DNA of 64,000 bases, from the NCBI GenBank assembly GCA_002269645.1, contig NIVC01001883.1:133378-197377 (forward strand), given 5' to 3'. This stretch comes from Macrostomum lignano (lineage: Eukaryota). This document shows positions 13,001 through 16,000 of the stretch, piece by piece. How positions within the stretch are numbered: position 1 is the stretch's first letter; every line of letters begins with the position of its first letter. The notes under the pieces were generated by a model that was not told the DNA's origin, did no database searches, and saw only the letters and a list, made by a program, of their open reading frames with translations. Position numbers and translations under genes: made by a program.

Positions 13001-16000
13001 TGCCTCGCTGCGAATGCACGGCTTGCTGGGACCTCGGGCCGGGATTTATTGGTCGGTGGAGAGGCAGGATAGATAGATAGATAGATAGATAGATAGATAG
13101 ATAGATAGATAGATAGATAGATAGATAGATAGATAGATAGATAGATAGATAGATAGATAGATAGATAGATAGATAGATAGATAGATAGATAGATAGATAG
13201 ATAGATAGATAGATAGATAGATAGATAGATAGATAGATAGATAGACAGATAGATAGATAGATAGACAGATAGATAGATAGATAGATAGATAGATAAATAG
13301 ATAGATAGATAGATAGATAGATAGATAGATAGATAGATAGATAGATAGATAGATAGATAGATAGATAGATAGATAGATAGATAGATCGTCAGCCTGCAGC
13401 AGGGTGAGCGCGGCTCCCCATTGGCTGCAAGGCAATTGGCCAAAGACACACACACGGAGGCCCAGTCAGTGGTGGCATGTAGCCCAGCTCATAGGCTGTT
13501 TTAAAGCGTCTCCTTTGCCTATTCAACTCTCTTCCCAAAGTGGGATTTCTCTCCAAGCTCGCCTGCCCCTGCTAGAATCAACGCTCGACCCCCGGGGTTC
13601 GCAGAGACGGTCGCAGACAGCTGGAGTTGCCGCCCCGCTATGCTCAGGCAGGTCCTGAGGCTCTCGCTGCTGGCTCTGCTGGTGCAAACTGCCTGGCAGC
13701 TGGGTGAGTCCTCGCTGAGCCCTGCGTCTGGCCAAACCGAAACTTTACTACATTTTCGGCGGCAATGTCAGTCAGGCGCCATCTCTCCGTCAGTCAGGCG
13801 CCATCTCTCCGTCAGTCAGGCGCCATCTCTCCTTCGCTCAGATGCCATCTCTCCGTCAGTCAGGCGCCATCTCTCCGTCAGTCAGGCGCCATCTCTCCGT
13901 CAGTCAGGCGCCATCTCTCCTTCGCTCAGATGCCATCTCTCCGTCTGTCAGGCGCCATCTCTCCTTCGCTCAGATGCCATCTCTCCGTCAGTCAGGCGCC
14001 ATCTCTCCTTCGCTCAGATGCCATCTCTCCGTCAGTCAGGCGCCATCTCTCCGTCAGTCAGGCGCCATCTCTCCGTCAGTCAGGCGCCATCTCTCCGTCA
14101 GTCAGGCGCCATCTCTCCGTCTGTCAGGCGCCATCTCTCCTTCGCTCAGATGCCAACTCTCCGTCAGTCAGGCGCCATCTCTCCGTCAGTCAGGCGCCAT
14201 CTCTCCTTCGCTCAGATGCCATCTCTCCGTCACTCAGGCGCCATCTCTCCGTCAGTCAGGCGCCATCTCTCCTTCGCTCAGATGCCATCTCTCCGTCACT
14301 CAGGCGCCATCTCTCCGTCAGTCAGGCGCCATCTCTCCGTCAGTCAGGCGCCATCTCTCCTTCGCTCAGATGCCATCTCTCCGTCAGTCAGGCGCCATCT
14401 CTCCTTCGCTCAGATGCCATCTCTCCGTCAGTCAGGCGCCATCTCTCCTTCGCTCAGATGCCATCTCTCCGTCAGCCAGGCGCCACCAGTCTGACGGCAG
14501 CTATAGCTGATAAATATATTTCTGACAGCCCAAGAGTGCACGGCCGCACCGCAAGGATCGGGTTTACGTTCTCGATAAAATCATCCCAGTCCCCTAGCGG
14601 TAGTCCCTGTTTGCCGCCACCCCTCGCTTTCTAGGAAACACGCTAATCGTTTTACGACTCTGCATGTCCTGCCGGGCCGCTGGCGGTCAGGGCATTTCTG
14701 TGTTCGCTGCCTGGCATCTCCGCTGCACAGCACTTGACCCCCGGGTCCCCCGCTGCCGCCTTGCCCGCTCTGCCCCCCTCTGTCGCTATTAGCCAGGCTT
14801 TGTTTTACAGCCCAACACGCCGCCCCGAGGAAGGGGGGGGGGCGGAGCTCGGCAGAAATCCGAGGTGCGGCGGCAGCAGCAGCTGGCAACAGGCGGGCGG
14901 GCGGGCAGGCAGCGCAAGTACAAAAGCGGGGATTTTTTCCTCCTTCGGGGTCTTAAAGGGGGGGGGGCGACAGCCTCGACTTTCTTGTCCTATACGGGGC
15001 CGCCCTGCCGCAGCTCCAATGCTTGCTGCTTTCAGCTTTTCTCTGCGCATGCAGAATTTTCGCCACAAGTTCGAACTTTCCCTCTCCCTCATCCAGCCCG
15101 GGTGTCCTCGTTGCTGAAAGAAGCTGCGGCAGGGGTCTCCCATCCTTCATCTGGCCGCGAGCTTCTCCTACCGTTTAGTTTTAATCCTATTTTTGTAAAA
15201 CAAAATTTAAAAAATCCCAGCTGTCAAGTGCTTGAGGACTTGCGATCGGGGCGGGGGGAGAGGCCGCATGGCAACAAAGCTGCAGATTTGCCAAGCTGGG
15301 AGAGCGGCAGCGCCGGTGGATCGAAGGGGAGGCCTTGCTGCCTTGCTTGCCGCCGTTGCGTGCCGCCGCGGTGTCCGCCAGCGCCGGTCTTTTGTGCCGC
15401 CCCCCCCCTGTCGCTTCCGACCGGCCGCGCGTCCACCCGTTGCTCAGCTGTCCGGCCGGGCTGGCGGGCGGGGGGCCGCCAGTGGAATCTCCATGAGTGC
15501 GCGGCAGGGAGGCGCGGCACGGGGCTACCGGGGCTTTAATCAGTTGGGCGCGCGTGTCCGCCTGGGCAGAAAAAGGAGAAGCACCAGAAAGAGAGAGAGA
15601 GAGAGAGAGTGGAGCGAAGAGCCCGGGCTTTCTGCTCAATTTTCTGCTCCAACTGCGGGGCTTTAGAGGGATTCTTGGGATCTGGGATCTGGGATCTGGG
15701 TCCTCGGAGCCGAGCCAACATTTGGGGAAGCGGGAGGGAGGAGGGCGGAGTGTTCTGAATTGGATTTTAGACGCCGAGGTGCTAACCCGGTTTGTGCCGC
15801 GGGATTTATTCAATCACCGCTGAGGAGCTGGGGCGACTCCCCTCCCGCGCAGCTCCCCGCGCCTCCCCAGCGGCGGCGGCGACTGCGGCCAAGAGAATGG
15901 CGAAAAATAGGAAAACTTTGAGCAGCTACCCGTTTTGTCTTATTATGCCCCAGCCACCAAACTGCCGGTGAACCGCCCCCCCCCCAGCCACCAAACTGCC

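Follow-up and report, generated by a model that had tools for sequence, protein, structure and literature searches.

The diversity of neurexins is central to ideas on how synapse identity is specified, and reviews divide the family into the promoter-defined classes alpha, beta and gamma, with invertebrates having essentially the alpha form, plus a gamma form in Caenorhabditis elegans. Beta-neurexins are made from an alternative first exon that lies within an intron and supplies both the start codon and the signal sequence, and these forms have been described as a vertebrate feature (PMC3229692, PMC12665717). Gamma-neurexins include mouse Nrxn1-gamma and the short form of C. elegans nrx-1 (PMC12665717). 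The honeybee gene neurexin I (AmNrxI) gives variants with three, two or one LNS-EGF-LNS repeats (PMC2570956), while alpha-like neurexins with four or five LNS domains are found in cnidarians and placozoans, and delta and epsilon neurexin genes have been described in cnidarians (PMC11294457). Here we describe a neurexin gene of the flatworm Macrostomum lignano that lies in a 64,000-nucleotide stretch of contig NIVC01001883.1 (Mlig_3_7 assembly, GCA_002269645.1). The whole of this stretch is referred to as the window, and window coordinates equal record coordinates minus 133,377. The first intron of the gene contains a 64-nt mini-exon at 13640–13703 which very probably encodes the N-terminus of an isoform with an alternative first exon, a neurexin that would start at LNS2.

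The gene model was built by hand from three-frame displays, with the splice phases kept consistent. The canonical form contains 15 exons (3252–4035 to 35694–36069) with a coding sequence of 4,716 nt, giving a protein of 1,571 amino acids that contains six LNS domains, three EGF domains, a transmembrane helix and the C-terminus KEWYV. Analysis of the canonical protein with Pfam gave Laminin_G_2 in six stretches (E = 1.5e-102) together with EGF, and exons 1, 5 and 10 each showed an EGF-like cysteine pattern. Alignment against the PDB revealed that the protein is collinear with residues 196–1190 of bovine NRXN1alpha (E = 3e-119). The C-terminal part matched the Pfam Syndecan domain at 23.3 bits, slightly below the cutoff of 25.2, and exon 15 provides the transmembrane helix, short cytoplasmic tail and PDZ-binding motif (KEWYV end) by which alpha-neurexins are recognised. 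These features identify the gene as a true alpha-neurexin. Exon 2 begins at the start of LNS2, where (Q/E)KDEVPTTF pairs in the PDB alignment with GKEEYIATF of the first LNS2 strand, and intron 1 therefore lies exactly at the EGF1/LNS2 boundary, a position which we take to be that of the vertebrate splice site SS1. The length of intron 1 was measured as 12,504 nt, in agreement with the approximately 12.5 kb given in the preliminary description of this DNA. The features of this part of the gene are as follows, with a slash marking each splice junction:

3252–4035, + strand: exon 1, the canonical alpha first coding exon (signal peptide, LNS1, EGF1), donor AGAC/GTGAGT, phase 1
4036–16539, + strand: intron 1 (12,504 nt), located between EGF1 and LNS2 and composed of tandem arrays and unique segments in a mosaic
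13417–13531, + strand: putative core-promoter elements, from motifs
13640–13703, + strand: probable alternative first exon, coding part (ATG, 21 codons in total and 1 nt, phase 1), read directly from the sequence
13704–13709, + strand: GTGAGT, the 5′ splice site that follows this exon (G/GTGAGT)
16540–16692, + strand: exon 2, start of LNS2, common to both isoforms, acceptor ccccacag/, phase 1 at both ends

The mini-exon (atgctcagg...cagctgg, 21 codons and one nucleotide) is positioned 9.6 kb after the canonical exon 1 and 2.8 kb before exon 2. Direct reading confirmed the phase-1, signal-peptide-like open reading frame ending at G/GTGAGT that had been proposed earlier, and its phase fits exon 2 at 16540. 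Both the canonical exon 1 and the mini-exon end in phase 1, the former with C/GTGAGT and the latter with G/GTGAGT. Exon 2 needs one upstream base, so that the codon formed at the junction of the mini-exon with exon 2 is G+AG, encoding glutamate. The 5′UTR of the exon would continue upstream of the ATG at 13640, and the nearest in-frame stop on that side is at 13502, a distance of 138 nt. The encoded peptide has an n-region MLRQVLR with a charge of +2 and an h-region LSLLALLV with a mean Kyte-Doolittle value of 3.0, and a single (-3,-1)-compatible cleavage site is predicted at VQT/AW. By this heuristic the peptide has the charged n-region, the h-region of 7–15 residues and the small residues at -3 and -1 that are typical of a signal peptide.

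Transcripts with a 5′ end in the unique island at approximately 13.4–13.6 kb would carry the ATG at 13640, and a cleavable signal peptide (.../AWQL) would be translated from the mini-exon. Splicing in phase 1 from G/GTGAGT (13703/13704) to exon 2 (16540) would then give a type-I membrane protein of 1,331 amino acids with the order LNS2-LNS3-EGF2-LNS4-LNS5-EGF3-LNS6-stalk-transmembrane helix-KEWYV. This product would lack LNS1 and EGF1 and keep all of the downstream parts, including the PDZ-binding tail. As exon 2 starts at the LNS2 domain boundary, it would be a clean modular truncation. The canonical exon 1 (3252–4035) would use the same exon 2 acceptor to give the six-LNS alpha form of 1,571 amino acids. 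The five-LNS receptor without LNS1-EGF1 put forward in the preliminary description is supported by the gene model, and also by the deposited model PAA86589.1 of a paralogous gene, which is considered below.

When the proposed isoform is compared with the described systems, the closest mechanistic analogue is the beta-neurexin, with a different intron and domain content. As in the M. lignano gene, the vertebrate beta-neurexin has a shortened N-terminus, an in-frame splice to shared exons, and the same transmembrane helix and PDZ-binding tail as the alpha form. However, the beta form starts before LNS6 and contains one LNS domain, whereas the M. lignano form would start before LNS2 and contain five LNS and two EGF domains. 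The promoter has been demonstrated for beta-neurexin, while the internal promoter of M. lignano is putative and proposed from motifs. The gamma-neurexin is likewise a short form that an alpha-neurexin gene yields by internal initiation, and also occurs in invertebrates, but it is without any LNS or EGF domain, whereas the predicted M. lignano product keeps LNS2–LNS6 and two EGF domains. AmNrxI resembles the M. lignano proposal in being an invertebrate gene that gives proteins with fewer LNS-containing units; there, however, exons are skipped, the N-terminal signal peptide stays the same and whole repeats are lost, while in M. lignano an alternative first exon would remove LNS1-EGF1 alone. The five-LNS neurexins of cnidarians and placozoans are separate genes and not isoforms of a six-LNS gene. 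The earlier listing of alpha, beta and gamma as the known classes is to be qualified by these separate five-LNS genes (PMC11294457) and by the repeat skipping of the honeybee (PMC2570956). In the neurexin literature that was searched, which covers alpha, beta, gamma and the cnidarian delta and epsilon forms, we found neither an LNS2-start isoform with a dedicated signal-peptide exon nor any study of neurexins in flatworms, consistent with the earlier suggestion of an isoform class that had not been recognised.

The strongest evidence for the mini-exon came from other loci of the same genome. An exhaustive HMMER search with exon 5 identified two M. lignano clusters, one containing the gene of the window and its near-identical homeolog, and the other a second neurexin with 47% protein identity to the window gene (53% divergence). 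The homeolog is found on NIVC01003103.1 and differs from the window at nine positions within the island that contains the mini-exon. The alpha exon 1 of the window gene and that of this paralog are 48% identical. M. lignano is neopolyploid and contains many duplicated blocks, and a minus-strand gene with the Pfam domain IP_trans follows all four of the M. lignano neurexin loci examined, which indicates that the loci are paralogous segments derived from segmental or whole-genome duplication. The paralog model PAA54791.1 (...EGF1...GGRCEN-L-REETPTTF...) is an alpha form, while a second model, PAA86589.1 (BOX15_Mlig002077g3), reads MRRRAASEIAAAALLLCASVAAVTN-L-REETPTTF..., in which a signal peptide is joined directly to LNS2. 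GenBank has listed PAA86589.1 under the name 'hypothetical protein' since 2017. The GenBank annotation of Mlig_3_7 was not generated ab initio but from RNA-seq by way of STAR, StringTie, TACO, TBONE and TransDecoder (PMC5730564).

The N-terminus of PAA86589.1 is encoded at locus L002 by a 76-nt exon (10001–10076) consisting of an ATG, 25 codons in all and one nucleotide, in phase 1 and followed by C/GTGAGT. The model corresponds to an exact splice from L002:10076 to 16608, 6.5 kb downstream, at the acceptor ctgcag/TTCGCGAGGAG. A copy of this mini-exon that is 98% identical was found at 23039–23114 of L004, the alpha-type copy of the paralog, again in phase 1 with C/GTGAGT. At L004, 12.7 kb separate the end of the alpha exon 1 (10312) from the mini-exon, and exon 2 is reached a further 4.5 kb on at 27601. 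The ATG of the paralog mini-exon is preceded by an in-frame stop at a distance of 12 nt, and no acceptor there would preserve the frame, so that this exon can only be a start exon. PAA86589.1 and the window gene thus share the genome, the architecture and a phase-1 signal-peptide mini-exon with GTGAGT in intron 1, a few kb before the LNS2 exon; they differ in the sequence of the signal peptide, that of the paralog being unrelated, and in the distance of the upstream stop (12 nt against 138 nt).

The mini-exon of the window is very probably real because the sister gene has the same mini-exon as the first exon of an RNA-derived model. The conservation expected of an alternative first exon was observed both in the homeolog (L005), where the mini-exon is identical and there are no differences within 13482–13711, and in the two paralog copies, where an equivalent exon occurs with matching position, phase and architecture. 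Both paralogs have kept the start codon, the open frame with its hydrophobic core, the phase and the consensus donor despite 53% divergence, which argues for selection, since a non-functional 64-nt open reading frame is not expected to keep its ATG, frame, core and donor over such a distance. Retention of the mini-exon in both of these ancient paralogs would imply that it predates their duplication. That flatworm neurexins keep a conserved second transcription unit, which starts from the EGF1/LNS2 intron, gives an LNS2-start five-LNS neurexin and predates the duplication, is a wider proposal that we regard as evenly balanced.

The frequency of such exons in the window was determined with a scan for an ATG followed by 15–40 open codons encoding a signal-peptide-like peptide and by a GT[AG]AGT donor. 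In its strict form, applied to both strands of the 64-kb window (128 kb), the scan gave 13640–13703 as the sole match. Local dinucleotide shuffles gave 0.28 sites per 128 kb when all phases were counted and 0.05 for phase 1 alone, corresponding to approximately 0.005 for the + strand of intron 1. As the criteria were post hoc, they were validated on the independent paralog locus. When one acidic residue was allowed in the n-region, the scan of both strands of the 68.6-kb L004 gave one match, which is the first exon of the transcript model, and the window still gave 13640–13703 alone. GTGAGT occurs twice on the + strand of intron 1, at the exon 1 donor and at 13704. The mini-exon donor scored 7.5 bits, within the range of 6.2–11.2 obtained for the 14 real donors of the gene. 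Synonymous codon usage in the mini-exon leans towards that of the exons (+1.46 bits), and the GC content at third codon positions is 0.86, compared with 0.87 in the coding sequence.

The island containing the mini-exon (13387–13766) lies between a (GATA)n array and a 22-bp minisatellite and is single-copy in the window, and its origin as a dispersed repeat or transposable element fragment was rejected for that reason. Derivation of the mini-exon by duplication of the exon 1 signal peptide was also rejected, the 21 matches in 33 positions being due to CTG runs. No other alternative first exon, beta-like or otherwise, was found across the gene under the strict criteria, and the introns before LNS6 contained no signal-peptide-like ATG exon in the same scan. 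Rfam gave no matches in the window.

For the way in which the 5′ end of the LNS2-start transcript is formed, we slightly favour an internal promoter. Upstream of the mini-exon there are inverted CCAAT boxes (ATTGG) at 13420 and 13435, a TATA-like TTTAAAG at 13500–13506, and TCAACTCTC at 13523–13531, which contains an initiator-like (Inr-like) TCA. The region upstream of the paralog mini-exon contains AGCCAATCAG, GATAAAG and, 22–23 nt downstream, TCAGCGCTC, in the same order and spacing. The sharing of CCAAT, (T/A)TAAAG and TCA(A/G)C.CTC is suggestive only, as the overall sequence similarity is at chance level and the pattern was noticed post hoc.

The alternative is that the exon is used as proposed and the 5′ end is formed post-transcriptionally from the alpha pre-mRNA, through trans-splicing of a spliced leader onto an acceptor upstream of the ATG or through a cis-splice in which a non-coding exon further upstream bypasses exon 1; such an origin competes with the promoter and not with the isoform, and we consider it unlikely but credible. 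Approximately 39% of M. lignano genes are trans-spliced, and many assembled transcripts are multi-gene precursors (PMC5730564). Transcription of the alpha form must in any case traverse the mini-exon region, and ten AG dinucleotides are found within 150 nt upstream of the ATG at 13640, for example ccccggggttcgcag/A at 13605 and ggtcgcag/A at 13617, with several more upstream of the paralog ATG. Also in favour of this alternative, the Smith-Waterman score between the promoter regions of the two paralogs was at chance level (P ~0.5). However, the polypyrimidine tracts of the candidate acceptors upstream of 13640 are poor, the order CCAAT, (T/A)TAAAG, TCA(A/G)C.CTC with the last element 22–23 nt downstream is the same in both paralogs, and the 64 kb contain no more than four closely spaced CCAAT/ATTGG pairs, all of which weighs against this alternative.

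Several observations weigh against the alternative first exon. Its use at this locus is argued by analogy with the paralog. The deposited annotation has nothing over 9060–19059 of the window, the model PAA62984.1 beginning at 19060. The exact junction of the mini-exon with exon 2 gave 0 matches in metagenome and metatranscriptome contigs, and a scan of the same collection with the exon 2 peptide found no relatives. A word-indexed protein search with the alternative N-terminus and exons 2–4 gave no matches in an index that apparently returns no M. lignano proteins, the full alpha query having also missed a deposited model with 100% identity. The signal-peptide assignment is a heuristic one, and cleavage is predicted from it. 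The junction in the paralog comes from an automated transcript assembly, and the 98% identity of the paralog copies makes the assignment of reads ambiguous. The signal peptides and upstream regions of the two paralogs could not be aligned above chance, so that we infer homology of the mini-exons from position, phase and architecture and not from sequence. Identity with the homeolog adds little, because 11% of random 210-nt intronic windows are free of differences (P ~0.1). The scan criteria were set after the candidate had been seen, and the likelihood ratio from codon usage is weak, at approximately 2.8 to 1.

It is improbable that the mini-exon is a chance structure, in which a leucine-rich open reading frame with an ATG happens to abut GTGAGT in a GC-rich intron and was never an exon. 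The frame is just 64 nt long, CTG-rich frames arise easily at 55–60% GC, and relaxed scan criteria do give chance matches, one at 37123–37177 and another at 29862–29967 that sits in a minisatellite, would start inside LNS4 and was rejected. The weak codon evidence, the negative junction and protein searches and the 5′-partial deposited model are likewise compatible with chance. Against this, with about 0.005 phase-1 sites expected in intron 1, chance would need a double coincidence, namely a single site in the same intron and in the same phase in both paralogs, that of the paralog moreover belonging to a transcript-derived model.

The mini-exon could also be functional in the paralog and, at this locus, an unused relic that has not yet decayed, which we consider quite improbable. 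Only the paralog has a deposited model with the mini-exon, the model at the window locus being 5′-partial. However, the homeolog has an intact mini-exon of identical sequence, and the 47% identity of the paralogs indicates an old duplication, after which an unused open reading frame should have lost its ATG, perfect donor and hydrophobic core. Least credible is an internal cassette exon that exon 1 would reach through the acceptor at 13605 or that at 13617 and that would be spliced onwards from 13703, adding 29–33 residues between EGF1 and LNS2, as although the frame is open from 13503, both AG acceptors preserve it and intron 1 is located at the EGF1/LNS2 junction, the acceptors are weak, a 14-residue Leu/Ala/Val core is implausible in an extracellular linker, and the arrangement is excluded in the paralog, where a stop precedes the ATG by 12 nt and acceptors that keep the frame are lacking.

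A start exon before LNS2 would, if confirmed, constitute a fourth route, besides alpha, beta and gamma, by which the extracellular domains of neurexins are set, with LNS1-EGF1 as a regulated optional module. LNS1-EGF1 is in our assessment the part of alpha-neurexins with the least known function, and such an isoform would single it out as naturally dispensable. Removal of LNS1-EGF1 only would show that the choice of promoter or first exon diversifies neurexins outside the vertebrates. If the intron position is indeed that of SS1, the mini-exon and SS1 could be different solutions for tuning the same junction. M. lignano is tractable for asking what LNS1-EGF1 adds, as transgenesis, RNA-seq, RAMPAGE and spliced-leader data exist for this species (PMC5730564).

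The remaining exons of the gene agree with the deposited GenBank model PAA62984.1 (1,220 aa, partial), which matches exons 4–15 residue for residue. This model starts at 19060 in intron 3, with intronic read-through ahead of exon 4, and as a 5′-partial model it is uninformative on the 5′ end of the gene. The public annotation leaves out exons 1–3, with the signal peptide, LNS1, EGF1 and the greater part of LNS2, and likewise the alternative first exon (3252–19059), so that the 15-exon model with the alternative first exon completes the 5′ part absent from the public annotation of this gene. Exons 4–15 in the following list are those contained in PAA62984.1:

17285–17460, + strand: exon 3 (LNS2)
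19120–19278, + strand: exon 4 (LNS2)
22025–22886, + strand: exon 5 (end of LNS2, LNS3, EGF2)
25180–25403, + strand: exon 6 (LNS4)
26252–26366, + strand: exon 7 (LNS4)
30622–31042, + strand: exon 8 (end of LNS4, start of LNS5)
31220–31508, + strand: exon 9 (LNS5)
32914–33157, + strand: exon 10 (end of LNS5, EGF3)
33535–33737, + strand: exon 11 (LNS6)
33907–34075, + strand: exon 12 (LNS6)
34479–34885, + strand: exon 13 (end of LNS6, stalk)
35052–35185, + strand: exon 14 (stalk)
35694–36069, + strand: exon 15 (transmembrane helix, cytoplasmic tail ...NEGSYRVDE..., PDZ-binding KEWYV, stop codon)

The paralog models PAA54791.1 and PAA86589.1 also differ by six residues (NYEK-DKQEIL-VNVIFDD), which are encoded by an 18-nt cassette micro-exon inside LNS2 at L004:33336–33353. 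Intron 3 of the window gene, between exons 3 and 4, contains exactly one matching micro-exon candidate, at 17910–17927 (ag/GACCAGCAGCGTCTGCAG/gtgaga, encoding DQQRLQ), with the same length and phase and with an alternative acceptor at 17904. The position of the micro-exon in LNS2 is presumably that of the vertebrate splice site SS2. Reviews describe extensive alternative splicing of neurexins as exclusive to vertebrates, and a micro-exon at the SS2 position would be notable in that respect.

Downstream of the neurexin gene and tail-to-tail with it lies the IP_trans gene, which occupies the minus strand from approximately 44125 onwards and encodes a phosphatidylinositol-transfer protein of 280 amino acids. 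Between the two, at 38684–42800 on the + strand, a 281-codon open reading frame (MDGLRPPEPMIFDTNRADNWRRWISAFDFYMKA...) is followed by several long Arg/Ala-rich frames. A degraded retroelement or retrotransposon was considered for this region (38.7–42.8 kb) and set aside, as none of the open reading frames tested had a Pfam match. An intronless gene of 688 amino acids at 52390–54456 (+ strand), called in GenBank, resembles the longin domains of Fuz/MON1/HPS1 weakly (E = 2e-4 and 6e-3). A frame of 1,391 codons at 57070–61242 (+ strand) contains a URGCP-like GTPase domain (E = 4e-113) and a URGCP domain (E = 1e-51); exact look-up of this open reading frame from its first ATG found no called gene, and the sequence continues in a different reading frame of 362 codons at 61227–62312, as could result from a frameshift, from an intron or from decay to a pseudogene. 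Very large GTPases of the URGCP type are known mainly from vertebrates.

The tandem-repeat load of the locus is extreme. Intron 1 contains arrays with periods of 44, 21/27, 20, 42, 24, 22 and 30 nt, and also (TGTC)158, (ATCT)91 and (GATA)80 (4093–16524), with further repeats throughout the introns of the gene. The lengths of the tandem arrays vary between the homeologs, moving the spacing of exons by kilobases. The GC content is approximately 55–60% in the neurexin region, compared with 29–37% at 48–52 kb. The segment 12482–13067, just upstream of the (GATA)n array and approximately 600 nt upstream of the mini-exon island, aligns in reversed orientation with L005:1207–1794, which represents either a small inversion between the homeologs or an assembly difference. 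The divergence of the homeologs is highest in the stalk and tail exons (34479–34885 and 35694–36069), at 3.4–3.5% compared with 0–1.8% in the LNS and EGF exons.

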